Shown here in pieces: positions 8,752 to 62,357 of a stretch of 64,000 bases of DNA. Under the pieces are notes generated by a model. It had not been told where the DNA came from. It made no database searches and saw nothing but the letters and a program-made list of their open reading frames with translations. Origin of the DNA: Lepidodermella squamata (taxonomy: Eukaryota; Animalia; Gastrotricha); NCBI GenBank assembly GCA_047495785.1, contig JBLDXI010000004.1, forward strand, positions 2,666,001 to 2,730,000, written 5' to 3'. The translations under genes and the position numbers were made by a program. The first letter of the stretch is position 1. Each line of letters begins with the position of its first letter.

Positions 8752-10363
8752 GCTGGATCAAGCGTGATCATGATTCTTCTGTTATGCTCTGTTTGCACTT
8801 GTGAGATAACTAACTTGATTACTAACTTACTAAATAGTAACTAAATACTTAATAGTAACCATTTAATAGTAACTAACTTGAACGTCAACTATTCGTGTTC
8901 ATAGCTGAATAAAATACAGGCAAATGATAATCTCAAATTTTTGCAGATTGCTTATTCCAATAATTGAGCGCTTCCCAAACTTTTAAACTTGTATGACACG
9001 TTAGTGTCGTTGTGTCCTGTGATCATGTCTCGTGGGACACCATACCAACCTGAGTGAAATTCAGCTGGGAATTGGAAGAATTGGCTGAGCAAAACAGTTG
9101 ATTGTCTGATATAATTGATTTTTAAATCAGCTCGGAATTGGAAAAAATCTCAGGTATATGGGTAATAATTACGCGAAAAGGGGGAATTTTAGTTGGATAA
9201 AACAATCTCCAAAACAAGAATGCTAGCAGAGGCCCTGTTTGAATTAGAGATGCCGCGGTTGAAATAATAACCGGATAACCGCGGTTAACCCTCCGAGCAC
9301 TGAAACCTAGAGTCAAAATTTCGACCAAAGGGGGAAATTTTCACCACAAAATGCTAAAGAGCGAAAATTGCACGTAAACGACAGCTGATTTGATGTTTTA
9401 TTGTTTGTTATTGATCTTCACATTATCAAAATCGATAAAACAATGAGATTGAGAGCTTGAGACTACGAATCATGATCACAATGACAACAAAGAACCCGGC
9501 GATGTTCGCAGGTGCTTTTGGTGCTGTTACAGTGCTATGTATGCTAGGTATAGACGCATAACGTACAACTATAAACACTGAGCGCGCGAATTTGCAGTAG
9601 CCGATAATTTCGCAGCCGATAATTTCGCTCATATGCCTCCACAATAGTGTAGTCCGTGCACTGTCTAGCACCTTGATGGAAAATCTTCAAGATAGCTCAT
9701 GGCGTAAAGTCTGCTTATTAGCATTGCTACTCATTGTTTCTTCTTGCAGGCTCATCTGAAAATTTATTAGTTAAAATGCCTTTTTGGGCGATCGCCGAGG
9801 TTTTTCACATTTAATGTCTCGAATCTGAAACTGCAATCTCTGATTGATTCGATCTCTGGAGGAAATTTAATCATGGCGAATCATTTTTAGCTAGCAGCCA
9901 TAACATTTCCGAATTCCGAAGTAGGATCCTCGAATTAGGGGCTATATTCAGGCTCAAATTGTATGGTCAAAGGTTCCCCCTTGTTAGGGTTTTCCACCTT
10001 GGTCGTGCGAAGTGGAAGTTTCTTGATCTTCTTGATCTTGGTCTTAGTTTCAAACAGAAATGATGGTCTTGGTCTTGGCACGAAACTGAAAAAATAGTAG
10101 ACTGAAGGTCGGCAACTATGATTATCATTTTTTATTTTTACCTGCCTGTCCATGTGTCTCGCAGAATAGTCGCATGAGCTGAGCGCCGAGCTTCTAATTT
10201 GGCAAACTGTTTCATTCCTTAGTTGTAACCAATGAGATAATTAATTCATTAGTTTATTTTACTGAGACTCGCAACTGGAGGTTAAATCATTCATGTATCA
10301 GATGAGTCTTTCTCCCACTTCATCATCAAACTCAGTTACAAAACGTTTTCTCTGAGATAGCAA

Positions 10364-54149: not shown

Positions 54150-55029
54150 TATTAATTGTTTTAAAGCAATTCAATTTTTTTTATTTATTTTGCTAGTATT
54201 CAATCTGAAACGTGTGAATGAAGTCGAACAGGTCTTGAAAATGTTATAACTAATAAATCAATAATCGATCGAAACACACATCTGGTTTTTGAAGCGTGAC
54301 AAACACCGAAAAATAGCACGAGCGAGACGGGGTTGTTTTTCAGTTTTGAAATCAACAAAATCAGGCAAGAAAAACAACAATATTGTTACTTCGCGCAGCA
54401 ATAGACTATTTCTCAGTTTTTTTAGATTTTCCGATTCGATTTGAGAAGGATAGGCTTGTCGAAGAAGCGTGATGTAACACAATCGCTTGAACTTGTTTGA
54501 TATGAAAGTCGTACTCGGCCTTGCAAAATCTCCTGATAAATGAGATTCAACCGTCCTCAAGTCTACGGTTTATTCCAATGCTGGCAACTTGTCGAAGCTC
54601 TACTGGATCCGACTGGATGGAAGAAATTCAAGCTTTCGCCACAGTTTTTGGAGTTTCATTGACAAATTTGACTTAACAACCGCCTTGATGGCGTTCGAAA
54701 GGAATTTTTGAAGATTAAATTGTGAATATTGAAAATATGGAATTTAACTTTTTTTTACAACGCTTGGAATTTCTACGCTTGGATAACTGGATACCTTTAT
54801 TTTTCAAACATAAAGAAGAGGCAAGTTACAGTTCCACGAAATGCGAACGAGAAAATAAAATTATAAATAAATGCATGGCCAAATTGTTAGAGAATGGTGA
54901 ATCTTATTGTATGCAGCATCGGACACAACGGCTTTCGTTTGAATTATGGGTCCCAGGTCCCAGCAGTTGGCCGTCTAATCACGGATCCTTGTCAAGAATC
55001 GCGTGTTCTGCGTAAGTTCGGAGTAAGCG

Positions 55030-55171
55030 CAGGGCGCGAAAGACGGGGGGAATGAGGGGTATCGTACCACGCAGTTCGGCAGGCCAAAGAGGAGAAACCC
55101 CCAAAAAACCACAGTCATAAAATTGGGGCCCGAAAATACCCCCTAGTTCGAGGATCCTAATTCGCGCACTG
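55030..55171. mobile_element. hAT-like MITE inserted in exon 2 of the pseudogene
   Basis: Ends CAGGGCGCGAA / TTCGCGCACTG; 8-bp TSD AGTAAGCG; removing it restores the reading frame. Confidence 0.9.
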
Positions 55172-55584
55172 AGTAAGCGTAAAATGCCCAGCCGCCACTT
55201 CTCTTGGCCGCAAATTTCCATGAGCTCCCGCAAAGGTGGGTAGCATCCATGCCTACTGCATGTTGGCCCTTGTGATGCGCTGCCATAGTCCAACCAGCGC
55301 CGTGTGTCCTAGCGCAAATTATCACCGAATGTGGCAGATGTCAGATCGGTTCCTGAAATAGATGAGGAACAATGAAAAAATGTTGTACATACAAGTTTCG
55401 CCTCTAAAACTACAAAATGTAAGCAAATTACTACTTTCATTTAGGAAAATTATGGAATAAATTCACTGAAATTTGAAATATTTGGAATTAAAGATCTACC
55501 ATCTATTTTTTTTAATTGAGTACTTTTGTTAAATATCTGCGTATCGATTTTCGAATTCTAAGATTTCTTAAATAATAATTTACC

Positions 55585-56451
55585 ATGGCCCAACTCAATC
55601 TGGAGACGGCGGAACAATTTGCGACGCTAAACCAGCTGATCGATGACGTGGCTGATCTCGAACTACGAGATAAAATTCGTAGGTCGGTGGCGATCATCCA
55701 AAACGGAGTGCTGGTGGGCATTTTCGCCAAACAAGCTCGAGACGACAAGGAGATGTTGGAGCACTTGGCCGAAAAAATTGCCAACGAAGATTTACTCGTC
55801 ATTTCTGGACTGCCAGAGAAAAACTGGCAAGAGGAGGTGAAAAAGCTGTTGCCGATAAACCTCCCTAAGTGGACAATCCAGGAACGCAAGGCTGATGGGT
55901 CGGTTGTCATCGAGCTGATCGAGGACGCAAGGCAAGCCAAACAGCGAATCTTTGCGGAGGCTAGAAAGTGGAGGTCGCCACTTAGGGCCTCGAACCCAGC
56001 AACTGGCCACATCCGCGAGGTAGGCGAGCTCCTCGAAAAGGAGAAGAAGGTCCTGGAGGAACAAGGTTTCCAAGGACTCGAAATACGAGGGGCGAACCTC
56101 GTACAAGGCAGGGCCGTTCTGACGAGATATTTCTCTCGTGGGAACAGGCTAGTAACCAAGCATGCGCCTATGGAGGACTTCAAGCCGGAAGAAAAGCCAG
56201 TTGGACCACAGTGCTTTGGCTGTTTTGAGTACGGACACATGCGATATCAATGCCCGAACCAAAACAACGGAAATGGCTACTACCGAAACAACTTCAACGG
56301 TTTCGACAACAACTACCAGCAACGTCGTCCCGGGGGAAACAACTTCCGTGACGAATACCACGGCAACCGTAAAAATTATAACGGCAACAACTACAACGGC
56401 AACAACTACAACGGCAACAACTATGGCTATGGCCGCCGGCCCAACTGGTAG
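55585..56451 (+). CDS. LINE ORF1, gag-like, with a zinc knuckle and an N/G/Y-rich tail
   Basis: CFGCFEYGHMRYQC (CX2CX4HX4C); NYNGN repeats; intact 288 aa. Confidence 0.85.
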   Translation: MAQLNLETAEQFATLNQLIDDVADLELRDKIRRSVAIIQNGVLVGIFAKQARDDKEMLEHLAEKIANEDLLVISGLPEKNWQEEVKKLLPINLPKWTIQERKADGSVVIELIEDARQAKQRIFAEARKWRSPLRASNPATGHIREVGELLEKEKKVLEEQGFQGLEIRGANLVQGRAVLTRYFSRGNRLVTKHAPMEDFKPEEKPVGPQCFGCFEYGHMRYQCPNQNNGNGYYRNNFNGFDNNYQQRRPGGNNFRDEYHGNRKNYNGNNYNGNNYNGNNYGYGRRPNW

Positions 56452-59400
56452 GCCGGGCACCACCCACTCCCAACGCTCAACAGATTCGAACTATTAGCTG
56501 ACTATGATGACTTTCGATCAGTGACCTGTGATGAAGATGATGAGGACAATGGAGAGGGCGAAGGCAGCATGAAAAATGACAAGAAACTACCTATAAAACG
56601 GCTAAAATGTAAGAGTAAAACAACCTTGCGCCAATCATCAAAAATTAAGGACGATAATGTTTTCAAAATTTGTACTATCAATACTACTACGCTAAATAGG
56701 AAAGAAGAGGAAACAAATTCTGAACTTCGTCTATATGACGCAGTGGCTTTGCAAGAGCACTGCAAAAAAGGCCAAGGCCGTATAAATCTTAGGCATGGCA
56801 CGATTTATTATAGTGGCGTAAATGATGGTAAGGCACAATCAGGGGCCGCACTATATGTTGGACGATGCAAATATATACATGTCATCGAGGTCAAATATAT
56901 CAATGAACGTATTATATCGGCTAGGCTTAAAGTAAATCGCGATATGTTTAACATTATTTCCGTCTACGCACCAGCAAATAATTGCACCAAAACATTAGAC
57001 GCCTTTCTTCAAGTACTGCAACAAGAATATGCGCGTTTGAACTCAAAAACAGGCACTACAATTGTAATGGGAGATTTGAACGGCCGGATTATGAGTGCAC
57101 AAAAATCAAAAACTGTAGGCCCTTATGGTGATAACATTAGAAATGATAAAGGAGATTTATGGATTGAATTTGCAAACAGCAACAATCTGTGTTTTATTAA
57201 TACGTTTTTCCCCAACATTGGGTACACATGGCAAAGGGGCAACGGAAAAACCCTTCGTAGATCCTTCTTAGACTACATCTTGGTCGATAAAAGCGAAAAA
57301 GATAAATTTGATGTTTGCGACGTTCAGGAAGAACCCATACTCGAATCAGATCATAGGCTAGTTCGTGGTGTTATTAAGTGCCCAAACTTTCAACGGAAAA
57401 AGGTTGACATTAAAAAATCAATTAAACATCATTTGCTTAGGAATGAGGAAAACAGTTCCAAGTTTAATGAAATTTTAGCTAGCAACATCGCAAATGAAAA
57501 CGAAAACCCTGTCTCAATAGAAGAGAAGTGGGTGAACACTAAATCTAACCTACTGGATGCTGCCAGATCCTCCTGCGGTGAACGAAAAGTAGGCAAAATT
57601 AGCGAAAAACCGCTCTGGTGGACACCATTAGCCAACAAAATCATTCAAAAAGGTAAAGAAAATTTTAAAAACTACACCAAGGGCCACATAGACCGAGAGA
57701 ATTATACAATAGCTAGAAATGAGAAAAATCAGGCCCTTGAACGCTTGAAAATTATTAAGGATCAAACTGAATTTTCTGAATTGGACAAATTACTTGAAAA
57801 TCCGACTGATTATGATAATATCAAAAAATTCTGGCTGGAAATAAAAAAATTGAGGGGAGAAAATAGAGAGAAAAGCGAACCCAATCCTCTTGAAAAAGAA
57901 GACGGCTCACTTACCAGCGGAATTGACGAAATATTAGAAGTTATGAAAAAGTATTTCATTGATCTTCTACAAGGACTTGAAAAGGAACCCAATAACCCCG
58001 ACGATGAAATTCTATTAGATAAAAATCCAAATTTAACAGAAATTACTCTCACCGAAATTAAAAATGCCATCGACCACATGAAAAACGGTAAAGCCCCGGG
58101 TATAGATGAAGTAAGACCCGAAATGATCAAAGCTCTGAGCGAGGCCAATATTGAATGGCTCAGGGAAATTTTGAATCGAGCTTGGATAGATAAGAGGGTC
58201 CCAGAAGAATGGTCAACGGCTATAATTACCCCAATTTATAAAAATAAAGGTGAGAAATCAAAATGCTAAAATTACAGAGGCATCAGCCTCTTATAAGTGT
58301 TGTAGGAAAACTCTATGCCATTATTCTCGAACGAAAATTGAGAGCATTAATTGGGTCAAAAATTTCTAAACTGCAATTTGGTTTTCAACCCCTCAAGGGC
58401 ACCAGAGACTGCATTTACGTTCTCCGACAAATTATAGAGAAAATTATATTCTTTAAGAAGGAACTCCACCTAGTCTTCATCGATCTCGAAAAAGCCTATG
58501 ATCTGGTGGACAGGGAAAAAGTATGGGCCGCCCTCCAAAATATGGGTGTAGAACCCAGCTTAATTGAAGCTATTCAAAGTCTATATAAAGTAAATAAAGT
58601 TGCTGTTAGAGTCGATTCTGAGCTCTCAGATTTCTTCTATGTTACCAGGGGACTAAGACAGGGTTGCCCGTTGTCTCCTTTGCTATTCATAGCGACCTTC
58701 AACAAAATTTGCGAAAAAATATCTGCTGAAAAATTAGGCTTTCCTATTAGCGAGACCGCAAACAGCGAGACCGCTATGAGCGAGACTGATTTCCTAAATT
58801 TACTAGCGTTTGCTGACGACGGAACACTTTTAGGCATGAACCACGACGAAATTTCACGACTACTTCACATTTTCGATTTGGCTTGCACCGAATTGGGTCT
58901 GAAAATTAACGCGGCAAAAACTCAATATATGATTATTTCTAGAGACGAGTCAGCCACTCAAAATTACGAATTGGAATTGAACGGGAAAAAACTTGAAAAA
59001 GTGACCAAATTTAAATATTTAGGGAGCATTATTACCAGTGACGGCAAAATCGATGAGGAACTAAACTACAGAATTTCTAAGGCAGGCAGTGTTTTCGGCG
59101 CCATGAATAAATTCATGTGCAACAAAAGTCAGGTTTCCATAGCTACAAAACTTAAGGTACTGACATGTGTTATAATACCTGCCATCATTTACGCCTGCGA
59201 ATCGTGGAACATATCGATAGCCCAAGAAAATAGACTAAACACTATAGAATATCGATGGCTTCGATCTATAGTAGGTGTCCACCTAATGGACTATATTCCA
59301 AATATAGACATTCGACTTGCGTTATGCGGAGGTCTCATTGAAGTGAGCCGCATTGTTGAAAAACAAAGGCTAAGGTATCTAGGGCACATAATTAGGTCAC

Positions 59401-59793
59401 GTGACTATGGACTATGACGTAGAAGGACTAATACACAAAATATATATTTGGACGCCTCCGCTTGGGTGGTTTGCACCCAGAGGTAGACCTCGAACCAGAT
59501 GGATCAACGGAGTGCATAGAAGCCTAATTAAAGTAGGTCTTACTAAGGAAATTCGCCGGAAAAAGAAAACCAATATGAACAATAAGGTCAAGGATAAGAA
59601 AAATAAAGCCACTAAGAAACGAGAAAATAGAAAAAATCCCGGCGAAAAGGATTTTGAGATCAAAATTATTCCCGATGTCCAACTAGCGGAATCGGTTTCT
59701 TTTGAAAAAGATGAATGGCGCATGGTTGTTAACTCGATTGAAAATTACGAATTCTATACAAAAAGCAGAATCCTCGACTGTGGGGGTGGGTGA
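56452..59793 (+). pseudogene. LINE ORF2 (AP endonuclease + reverse transcriptase), disrupted
   Basis: ALQE, ISVYAP, GDLNG, LDYILV, SDH, KAPGID, NYRGISL, FIDLEKAYD, GLRQGCPLSP, FADD, RGRPRTRW; stop at 58267, frameshifts at ~58290 and 59403-59416. Confidence 0.92.
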
Positions 59794-61001
59794 GGATCAT
59801 TCTTCGCCTGCCTTCGCCCTCTTCAAAACCGGAAACGGTACACGACGCTCAGTCCCGAAGAGGATAAATAAAAACATTATTATATTATATTATTATTACT
59901 TTTGTTAATTTATTAATTTTTATCATCTGTATGAAAATGAATAAATCAAAAATTTTGAAAAAAAATAAAAAACTGATGCAACCTTCGGACAAAAATCCGG
60001 TTTTACCCTTGATAGATTTCGTGAGAGCAGCTAGACCTCCGAGCCAGATGTGGTAAAACTCCGGGTTCATAGCGCATCCGGTGATGTAGGCCACCATCGG
60101 ATAGCACGGGCGTGGCAAAGTATCAACTTTCACGCAAAGAACCGGCAAGACGTTTGTGCAGTTCGTATCACCTCGAGAAAAATTGCAGTTCGAACAGCCA
60201 ATTCAATACCAAGCGTTGATAGGTGAGATTCAACTGCCCAAGTCAGGCCCTTGCCATTAGCTGCCAAGGCAGGGTTAAAGGCGCAAATGGAGACGGTAAA
60301 AACGGCCGTAATTAACACTTTAAGCGCCGGGGTTTTTCACGTGTACCATTCCTGCAGCGCCGGGGTATTTTCGATGTACCTACCAAAAAATTCGACCCCC
60401 AGATTATTATATTTTCTTGAAGTTCATGGAATTCTAAGATCATTGGTCAATGTCCCGAATTTTTCTAACTCATCCTTATAGCAGATAGGAATTGCCGTAG
60501 CTGGGCCACTCGACGGCTTACGCCCTTTTTGGCAATTCGAGCCTAACCATGGAAATTGGCAAAACGTTTCAAGGACGTTTTGAATAGATATTTAGTGTGT
60601 TCGAAATTGCTAGGGAGATGAGTTATGACAATTGCGCGTCCGCGAATGAGGACAAAATTTCGGCGTAAGGGGGGAGTATTAGATGCGCAAAACATACATG
60701 AGCGAGGTATGACTCATCACACACACAACACTTCCCTAAAATAACACTATAAAATGAGACGAACGCACATATAAATGGGCCGAGCCCACTGGCATAATCA
60801 AAAGCCCATTGAAAGGTGAATCGGCTACGTTCTGTATCAATGGCGTTGCCAACGTCATTGTCGTGAATTCAAAGGCATTGAGAACCTATACAGCTGTGAT
60901 TTGACACACCTGGTCAATGAAAGCTCTGCAAAAGTAAGTATTCTATATAATTTAATTTTCTGCTCGAATATAAGCTCGTCTGGCGCATTGCTAGCATTCC
61001 G

Positions 61002-61858
61002 ATGGATGCCTCCATTTGCGCAGTAAATTATTATTCAACCAACTCAGGTAGCAAGAAGATCAGCATAGGAAAAGAGTGGAATAAGAAGAAAGACCCAGCG
61101 CCTCATTTGAGCTGCTTATATCTAGCTTACAAATACCGGCAACGTCAATCACGGTTTCTCGTTCGATTGCAGCGAGAGTTTACAACCAAATTTGGCATAA
61201 AAATTGTTCCAGCGTACGGTACATTGTTAGGTAAGGGCTTTATATCGAATCTGCAATCATTTATCGATTGATTTGGCAAAAGGCTTCATGCGAGAAGGGG
61301 ATATAATTCCCTTCGACGATGATCTGGATTTGTTTGTTACGAAGACTCAATTTGGCGATTTAATGCAGTTTTACGAGCAAGGCAGGCCAATAAAAAAACA
61401 GAAGGATCAAAGAATAGTCAAGATCGAAGGAACGGATGGAAAAATGAAAACATGGGTGCTTGGAATTGAAAGAGGCGATCGGAAAGAAATTTCACACATA
61501 TCTGTATATTCATGGCAAACGAACATCGTACAATGGCCGTTTGCAGAATTCTTTCTGGATGAGCGATTTCATGTAACTAATTGACATATTTTAATCCTGC
61601 TTGTCATTTTAATTTTTGCAGGAAAACACGAAATTGACTGCGGAAACCGTGAAACTCAAGGCTGATTCAGGAACTGAGTTCAGATACTATCTACCCGATT
61701 TCTGGCGGGAGTTTCTTGTTGAAAATTATGGTGATGATTGGCAAACCGTGGTGAAAATTGCCGGTGGACACAGAACAGACCACGACAAGAACTTGCAGAG
61801 CTCAACAAACTGTTGCTATGATTTCAGAACAGGATTACTAGTAGCGCAGCGAGCCTGA
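61002..61858 (+). CDS. LicD/fukutin-related nucleotidyltransferase-fold protein (at least 3 exons; 5' end uncertain)
   Basis: AYGTLL|GFMREGDIIPFDDDLDLF joined by a short GT-AG intron; C-terminal LVENYGDDWQT. Confidence 0.8.
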
Positions 61859-62357
61859 GAATGAGTGAGATCCTCAGATTTTCAGATTTTCTTTCCCACC
61901 TAGATAATGATGTATCCAAGGAGCAGTAAACTGCACAAATTTGATGTGTTTCTTCCGCTTCTGGCTCAAAAGCTCAAAATGTGCCTATCGACAACGTTTT
62001 TCAACGACCCACGTTGTGGTTGAAAACTTGTCCAAATATTACGAGTCATATATCATTCGAAAGCCAGTAAAGTACAGATTAAAAAATTGGGATTGGAATT
62101 TCAAGTTTCGCTAACGTTTGTTGCAATCTTACGATACAGTGGCCGTATCCTTCAACTGTCGTGATGTCTTGAACTGTACTATTCCAGCAGCAACATGTCT
62201 CTGACAATTGCGCGTTCACGAATGAGGACAAAATTCCGGTGTAAGGGGGGAGTATTCGTGGGAAGACGTGAGCACACCTTACAAAAGAAATGTAGTTTTC
62301 CTTTTCTTTAATTCAATTTTTGTCAGAATCTATGCAGGTGTAAATGAGCCGGTTATA

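Follow-up and report, generated by a model that had tools for sequence, protein, structure and literature searches.

A two-exon pseudogene on the minus strand

We analyzed a 64,000-nucleotide stretch of the genome of the gastrotrich Lepidodermella squamata (assembly GCA_047495785.1, contig JBLDXI010000004.1, positions 2,666,001 to 2,730,000), referred to below as the window and numbered from its first letter. Minus-strand translation revealed at 60318-54957 a two-exon pseudogene, in which the pieces of a protein domain known mainly from bacteria are separated by an intron carrying a long interspersed nuclear element (LINE), and interrupted in exon 2 by a miniature inverted-repeat transposable element (MITE). 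All peptide strings given in an earlier note on this DNA, which had proposed a broken gene of bacterial type at this place, were reproduced by the translation. The features of the locus are collected in Table 1.

Table 1. Coordinates of the pseudogene, its lesions and the inserted elements (positions in the window).
Feature	Position	Strand	Details
Exon 1	60007..60318	-	hydrophobic signal-like segment LITAVFTVSICAFNPALAA, then first half of the family domain; motif order KGLTW ... LPVLCVKVD ... EFYHIWLGG ... KSIK
Intron	55353..60006	-	GT...AG ends, phase 1
Exon 2	54957..55352	-	(G)TDLTSATFGDN / ICARTHGAGWTMAAHHKG ... GGWAFYAYS / MITE / ELTQNTRFLTRIRD, stop, TANCWD
Frameshift 1	60199..60205 (about)	-	frame 1 (…STLGIEL) to frame 3 (IGCSNCN…)
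Frameshift 2	55316..55322 (about)	-	between ...ATFGDN and (I)ICARTHG
TAG stop	54975..54977	-	replaces the conserved Gln of the C-terminal DQxANCW
MITE, 142 bp	55030..55171		in exon 2; 11-nucleotide terminal inverted repeats CAGGGCGCGAA / TTCGCGCACTG
MITE target duplication, 8 bp	55022-55029 and 55172-55179		AGTAAGCG
LINE retrotransposon	55533-59896	+	within the intron, antisense to the gene; Pfam matches and open reading frames
LINE ORF1	55585-56451	+	CCHC knuckle
LINE ORF2, AP-endonuclease	56521-58269	+	Pfam match
LINE ORF2, reverse transcriptase	58263-59417	+	Pfam match
LINE target-site duplication, 12 bp	55521-55532 and 59897-59908		TACTTTTGTTAA

Frame 1 of exon 1 runs from the hydrophobic segment into the part with KGLTW, KGLTWAVESHLSTLGIEL, and frame 3 continues from IGCSNCNFSRGDTNCTNVLPVLCVKVDTLPRPCY/IGCSNCNFSRGDTNCTNVLPVLCVKVD onward to EFYHIWLGGLAALTKSIK. 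A hydrophobic core with a mean Kyte-Doolittle value of 2.4 and an ALA-A motif precede KGLTW. Exon 2 is entered in the frame that reads GTDLTS...FGDN; the next frame gives ICARTHGAGWTMAAHHKG...GGWAFYAYS and then ...AYSELTQNTRFLTRIRD, a stop and TANCWD, the reading beyond the MITE being resumed in the same frame with ELTQNTRFLTRIRD.

The donor GT of the intron is located at 60006-60005, and its acceptor AG, preceded by a pyrimidine tract, at 55354-55353. When the LINE is subtracted together with one of the two target duplication copies, 277 bp of intron remain, with a G+C content of 24%, as compared with 50-53% in the exons. The product of splicing, ...SIK-G-TDLTS, matches the family consensus V.GT.LTS exactly, with no residue lost or gained. 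Thus, both the borders and the restoration of the consensus upon excision bear out the spliceosomal-type intron that the earlier note had proposed.

The locus is a non-processed pseudogene, which has kept its exon-intron structure and has acquired several independent lesions. Both frameshifts named in the earlier note were visible when the translation was set against the family alignment: the site of frameshift 1 corresponds to LG.D.VGC.GCN, which is unbroken in the family, and the short proteobacterial members read straight through the site of frameshift 2 (LTSAATGDKLCATSFGAGWRMA). In the column of the Gln that is replaced by TAG, Q is present in 94% of 230 family rows. The earlier note did not mention a further lesion, the missing start codon. 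The reading opens with GTG (60318-60316), and an in-frame TGA is located 18 nucleotides upstream (60339-60337), so the pseudogene has no ATG. Additionally, the MITE brings into the coding sequence an in-frame stop of its own.

A 33-bp tandem duplication (AGCGCCGGGG...) lies immediately upstream of exon 1, at 60323-60380. Some 300 bp upstream of this exon (60342-60700) are repetitive, with a depth of 1000-2400, and include a 55-bp match to 62202-62256. The presence of repetitive sequence directly upstream of exon 1 suggests that promoter and start codon may have been lost to a third insertion.

Relation to a secreted six-cysteine family

Six pieces of the two exons (e1a, e1b, e20, e2a, e2b and e2c) were handled as separate rows in searches and trees. 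A 65-amino-acid piece of exon 2 (55146-55340) matched 20 proteins at E <= 1e-3 in a phmmer search of 1.84 billion proteins, and the exon-1 piece matched those same proteins with 44-65 bits. The best of these matches had an E value of 1.4e-13. The consensus of the family is KG[ML]TW..VGC.GCN.Y.GDT.C...LPILC.K....RP.Y....EFY.GW.GG....V.GT.LTS..A..C in its first part, and ...G.GWRMAEHHDG...GMD....G..W....GGW.FYAYG....RFW..I.DQ.ANCW[DN], followed by the protein end, in its second part.

The six pieces were collinear on the family profile and did not overlap. They retain 25 of the 29 columns that are conserved in at least 90% of the 230 family rows; of the four lost columns, two coincide with breaks (the Cys of IGC, which the aligner cut off, and the Gly that the intron divides), and the other two are changed from W to L and from Q to a stop. 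The invariant Asp of HHDG is replaced by Lys, and all six family cysteines are readable. Judged by these alignments, the window gene is a member of an uncharacterized secreted six-cysteine family.

Several other searches contributed nothing to this assignment. Single pieces gave no usable result in sequence searches of Pfam, NCBIfam and PDB. The exon-1 piece found no candidates in a word-index protein search, in which a length filter drops full-length relatives, and no usable match in the ESM Atlas. A back-translated pattern scan of bacterial genomes with the exon-2 piece gave no confirmed match.

A profile search returned 135 relatives, none with a Pfam domain over the region in question, and every named one was bacterial: Anaerolineae, Archangium, Bdellovibrionales, Acidovorax, and metagenome-assembled genomes (MAGs) of Ideonella and of Pseudomonadota. 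A scan with the family alignment, in which each species was represented by one genome, detected the family in at least 224 bacterial genomes of many phyla. They included Myxococcota (Cystobacter, Corallococcus, Myxococcus, Archangium, Sorangium and Nannocystis), Lysobacterales, which are xanthomonad relatives (Lysobacter, Dokdonella and Tahibacter), as well as Burkholderiales, Thermoanaerobaculia, Anaerolineae, Desulfobulbaceae and Fibrobacterota. Viral contigs contained no relative of the family. The records of the Ideonella and Pseudomonadota MAGs carry the label "flagellar hook-length control protein". Hence, what the earlier note had proposed for bacteria, namely an uncharacterized family of myxobacteria and xanthomonads that is often labeled as a flagellar hook-length control protein, was recovered by search, in the second case for Lysobacterales. 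No ciliate, a group that the note had also listed, was among the named relatives.

We also considered whether the family is true FliK, and rejected this identity. Searches with intact members gave no Pfam or NCBIfam match at E <= 1, not even to the FliK domain (Flg_hook), and the bacterial gene neighborhoods examined are not flagellar. A literature search on the mislabel and gene transfer turned up only papers on true FliK.

No paralogue, close or intact, was present in the 64-kb window, and the protein libraries held no close match. We compared the window also with run X1, which consists of DNA contigs of the organism and looks independent, yet is possibly the source run of the assembly itself. 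The exons have single-copy depth in X1, which argues against a paralogue of at least 85% nucleotide identity. The intact paralogs that the earlier note had considered possible therefore did not come to light.

Predicted structure and possible role of the family

The AlphaFold2 model of P0044, an intact member, was confident, with a predicted local distance difference test (pLDDT) score of 90 and a predicted template modeling (pTM) score of 0.84, obtained with 87 aligned sequences. Its only matches above a template modeling (TM) score of 0.5 were three ESM Atlas clusters of the family itself, 100% bacterial. A wide VIA-align search returned 0 chains at Z >= 2, an unusually empty outcome that may have a technical cause. 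An endostatin/DUF1554-type C-type-lectin-like fold was considered as well, and none of the searches (Foldseek against PDB and BFVD, VIA-align) supported it. On the evidence of this model, the family possibly represents a new fold.

The members are equipped with a signal peptide and with six conserved cysteines, and the domain either stands alone or is joined to matrixin, subtilase, fasciclin, BNR/sialidase, PPC or metallophosphatase domains. In P0002, P0101, P0048, P0074 and P0103, one or two copies of the domain are placed C-terminally to matrixin-type metalloproteases; the domain also occurs with fasciclin or BNR/sialidase. The matrixin, fasciclin and BNR fusions hint at a targeting or binding role. 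Together, the signal peptides, the six cysteines and the fusions to secreted domains lead us to guess that the domain most likely acts outside the cell, as a disulfide-stabilized module that binds a surface or glycan ligand. Alternatively, the conserved E-H-H-D cluster might indicate metal binding.

Transposable elements within the pseudogene

The presence of a LINE in the intron, as proposed in the earlier note, was confirmed by matches to AP-endonuclease and reverse transcriptase and by the target duplication. ORF2 of the element is frameshifted and split near 58263 and 59401. The sequence TACTTTTGTTAA is the sole exact repeat of at least 12 nucleotides between the two LINE border regions, and the occurrence of this duplication at both ends sets the limits of the element given in Table 1. 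In run X1, LINE bins have depth in the thousands. Many LINE pieces of at least 99% identity were seen in run X2, which is complementary DNA (cDNA)-like, and in the same run adaptor-like loose ends were seen just before 55532, at the LINE 5' end. The LINE family looks recently active.

The coordinates of the MITE in the earlier note, 55030-55171, proved exact. The element appears hAT-like, to judge from its terminal repeats, which start with CAGGG, and from its 8-bp target duplication. Its depth in X1 is also in the thousands, and its other copies part from the exon 2 copy exactly at 55171. A second, partial copy is located at 9917-9965 of the window. At 55069, 23 contigs vary from the exon 2 copy.

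Residence of the locus in the animal genome

Unique X1 contigs with a depth of about 40-50x span 54700-55114, 55130-55558 and 59861-60341, and show zero differences from the window. They cross the exon/MITE, exon/intron and intron/LINE borders unchanged, which indicates that these borders are real. Moreover, the depth of the LINE and the MITE identifies both as repeats of this genome. The locus is flanked by host CUB/astacin and LicD exons. At 49-54%, the G+C content of the pseudogene exons is within the host-exon range of the window (40-54%) and far from the 73% of a bacterial homologue locus.

An exon-sized open reading frame on the plus strand, at 61273-61584, matches the LicD family (E = 1.5e-5) and has a DDDLD motif. 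It is probably part of a fukutin-like host gene beside the pseudogene.

Only the fact that the family is found chiefly in bacteria would favor the view that the locus is no part of the animal genome and stems from a bacterial or protist contaminant or from a chimeric assembly. This explanation is extremely improbable in view of the spliceosomal-type intron, of the high-copy host LINE and MITE that sit inside the gene, each with its target duplication, of the animal genes on either side, and of the unique X1 contigs over the borders, to be read with the note that X1 may be the assembly source sample. As those contigs match the window fully over the exon/intron and exon/MITE borders, contamination is excluded. 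The argument from the intron and the host transposons that the earlier note had made against contamination was therefore upheld, and strengthened by the border-crossing contigs. Hardly any probability attaches, either, to the idea that the locus still yields a working protein by frameshifting, readthrough or alternative exons. In favor of it, most conserved residues are unharmed, and the exons have a trace depth of 0.6-1.7 in run X2. However, four independent coding lesions and the in-frame stop of the MITE would all have to be bypassed, there is no ATG, the exon 1-exon 2 junction is not among the listed joints of run X2, and the conserved Trp of RFW is substituted, as is the conserved Asp of HHDG.

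Origin of the gene

The family is broad in bacteria and patchy in eukaryotes, and for this reason an ultimately bacterial origin is the best reading of the window gene. We consider it likely that the gene was acquired horizontally, became resident in the host as an intron-bearing gene for a secreted protein that served as a binding module, and died recently.

The pieces did not settle on one branch, and their positions had weak support. In a FastTree tree, the exon-1 piece grouped with Anaerolineae (support 81). With the site-heterogeneous C20 model in IQ-TREE, the exon-2 piece once joined Fibrobacterota-type rows. We also summed placements: all branches of a fixed 62-row backbone were scored for each of the pieces, and the scores were added. 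The summed weights were 0.59 for a Chloroflexota-type branch, 0.13 for the short proteobacterial group, 0.21 for deep branches and 0.035 for a eukaryotic clade, named clade A here. The short architecture of the window gene and its LTSA.TGD..C resemble the short proteobacterial group, and its GW.MA[AS]HH and IRDQ resemble clade A.

The eukaryotic members were found in metagenomes. Two of them (P0019/P0030) are on a 161-kb contig, L001, which is gene-dense, has a G+C content of 35%, and carries Cullin, Mo25, Sad1/UNC, TAFII55 and EF-hand genes. Two intact tandem copies of the family gene occupy L001:5158-6783, between the EF-hand and Sad1/UNC genes, an arrangement suggesting that the family has established itself here in eukaryotes independently. 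Clade A is a second group (P0016/P0025, P0013, P0008, P0033 and P0146-P0151), found on contigs of about 1 kb, in one of which a copia-like polymerase fragment adjoins the family gene.

A number of observations weigh against the account that we prefer. At least two metagenomic eukaryote lineages carry the family. The exon-2 piece grouped with clade A in the FastTree tree (support 98), and in a thinner IQ-TREE C20 set it fell, with the N-terminal piece, into the clade-A group (support 89), the exon-1 piece being unplaced. In the summed placement, bacterial branches were ahead by just about 3 log-likelihood units, with all alternatives within that distance. Searches of the protein libraries, in which intron-split genes would be missed because of the length filter, returned no named metazoan and no other named eukaryote. 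A spliced transcript of the pseudogene was not seen, as the joints listed for the cDNA-like run did not include junction 60007/55352. As for the binding role, it is a guess, and the P0044 model had no neighbor in PDB (Foldseek) or among viral models (BFVD).

The existence of eukaryotic members makes possible a eukaryotic source, a eukaryotic intermediary or an older eukaryotic ancestry. That the gene came from another eukaryote, such as protist prey or a symbiont, or from an older eukaryotic branch of the family, and not directly from a bacterium, seems unlikely to us. In favor of this alternative, the tandem copies on L001 lie among Cullin, Mo25, Sad1/UNC and TAFII55 genes, and the second clade is found beside a copia-like polymerase fragment. 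The exon-2 piece joined this clade in two of three trees, the N-terminal piece did so once, and the states GW.MA[AS]HH, SW.[WF]A and IRDQ are common to both. However, clade A holds just a small share of the summed likelihood weight given above, and identity to it is 41-45%, no higher than the 40-53% found for bacterial members, which is also the range of identity of the window pieces to any member, bacterial or eukaryotic. Moreover, the signal-like segment that leads straight into KG.TW, as well as LTSA.TGD..C, match the short proteobacterial group, and none of the eukaryotic members examined has an intron at the window site. The bacterial horizontal transfer put forward in the earlier note thus stands in part: a mainly bacterial family is present inside animal DNA. 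A direct bacterial source does not follow, as eukaryotic members exist and the trees disagree.

History of the gene

Under the preferred account of an ultimately bacterial origin, horizontal transfer would have brought into an ancestor of the animal the gene of a small secreted protein, some 190 residues long, made up of a signal peptide and a single six-cysteine domain of some 165 residues. The copy would then have settled as a nuclear gene, with the gain of one spliceosomal intron and the adjustment of its base composition to that of the host. As the bacterial homologues and two eukaryotic members (on L001 and L090) are uninterrupted at the intron site, the intron was most simply gained after arrival. 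Selection would have maintained the copy for a period sufficient to preserve almost all residues that are conserved in the family. Its inactivation, probably recent, would have involved the two frameshifts, the nonsense change at the conserved Gln, the loss of the start codon and the insertion of the MITE into exon 2; the LINE would also have inserted into the intron.

The retention of the conserved positions, together with transposons that are very similar to many other copies, suggests that the gene was probably functional in the host lineage and died recently. The earlier note had described the acquisition as old. The retained residues and the young-looking transposons point instead to recent inactivation.

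A bolder proposal, which we regard as doubtful, is that the domain is a new fold that entered eukaryotes several times (in the animal and in at least two microbial lineages) and worked in the animal after intron gain. If this were true, intact orthologues would be expected in sister species, since the protein would have worked after the gain of the intron, and they would open a way to the function of a bacterial family of secreted proteins that is widespread and unstudied.

Comparison with known systems

Hypothetical secreted proteins of bacteria (e.g., P0054 of Ideonella sp. MAG2) share with the window gene the single domain, the motif order, the six cysteines and a length of about 160-220 amino acids. 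In members of the Ideonella type, the signal peptide runs directly into KG.TW, as does the signal-like segment of the window copy, and LTSA.TGD..C...GAGWRMA is present, with 40-53% identity over the pieces. Unlike the intron-bearing and broken window copy, the bacterial genes are intact, uninterrupted and in operon-type contexts. The metagenomic eukaryotic members also have this domain, preceded by a signal peptide of eukaryotic style and in a eukaryotic setting, and some of their exon-2 residue states are common with the window. They differ in being intact, in having no intron at the window site and longer N-terminal linkers, and in showing 41-45% identity to the pieces.

The locus illustrates cleanly the complete course that a foreign gene can take in an animal, from arrival through intron gain, compositional adaptation and selection to death, with every step readable within 5.4 kb. 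A by-product of the analysis may matter more, namely a large family of secreted six-cysteine proteins that has no Pfam model and no solved relative, and some members of which are mislabeled as flagellar.

Bdelloid rotifers reportedly contain horizontally acquired bacterial genes and pseudogenes, as Gladyshev, Meselson and Arkhipova are said to have described in 2008. Like the window gene, those transfers concern foreign-type genes in an animal chromosome that gained introns, lie among transposons and are partly decayed. There is no difference of kind between them and the window gene, whose family is without a described function or a solved fold, and whose copy is dead. Taken together, a horizontally derived, intron-bearing, dead gene is of a known kind in small invertebrates, and the pseudogene of L. 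squamata is a clear but ordinary relic of that kind.

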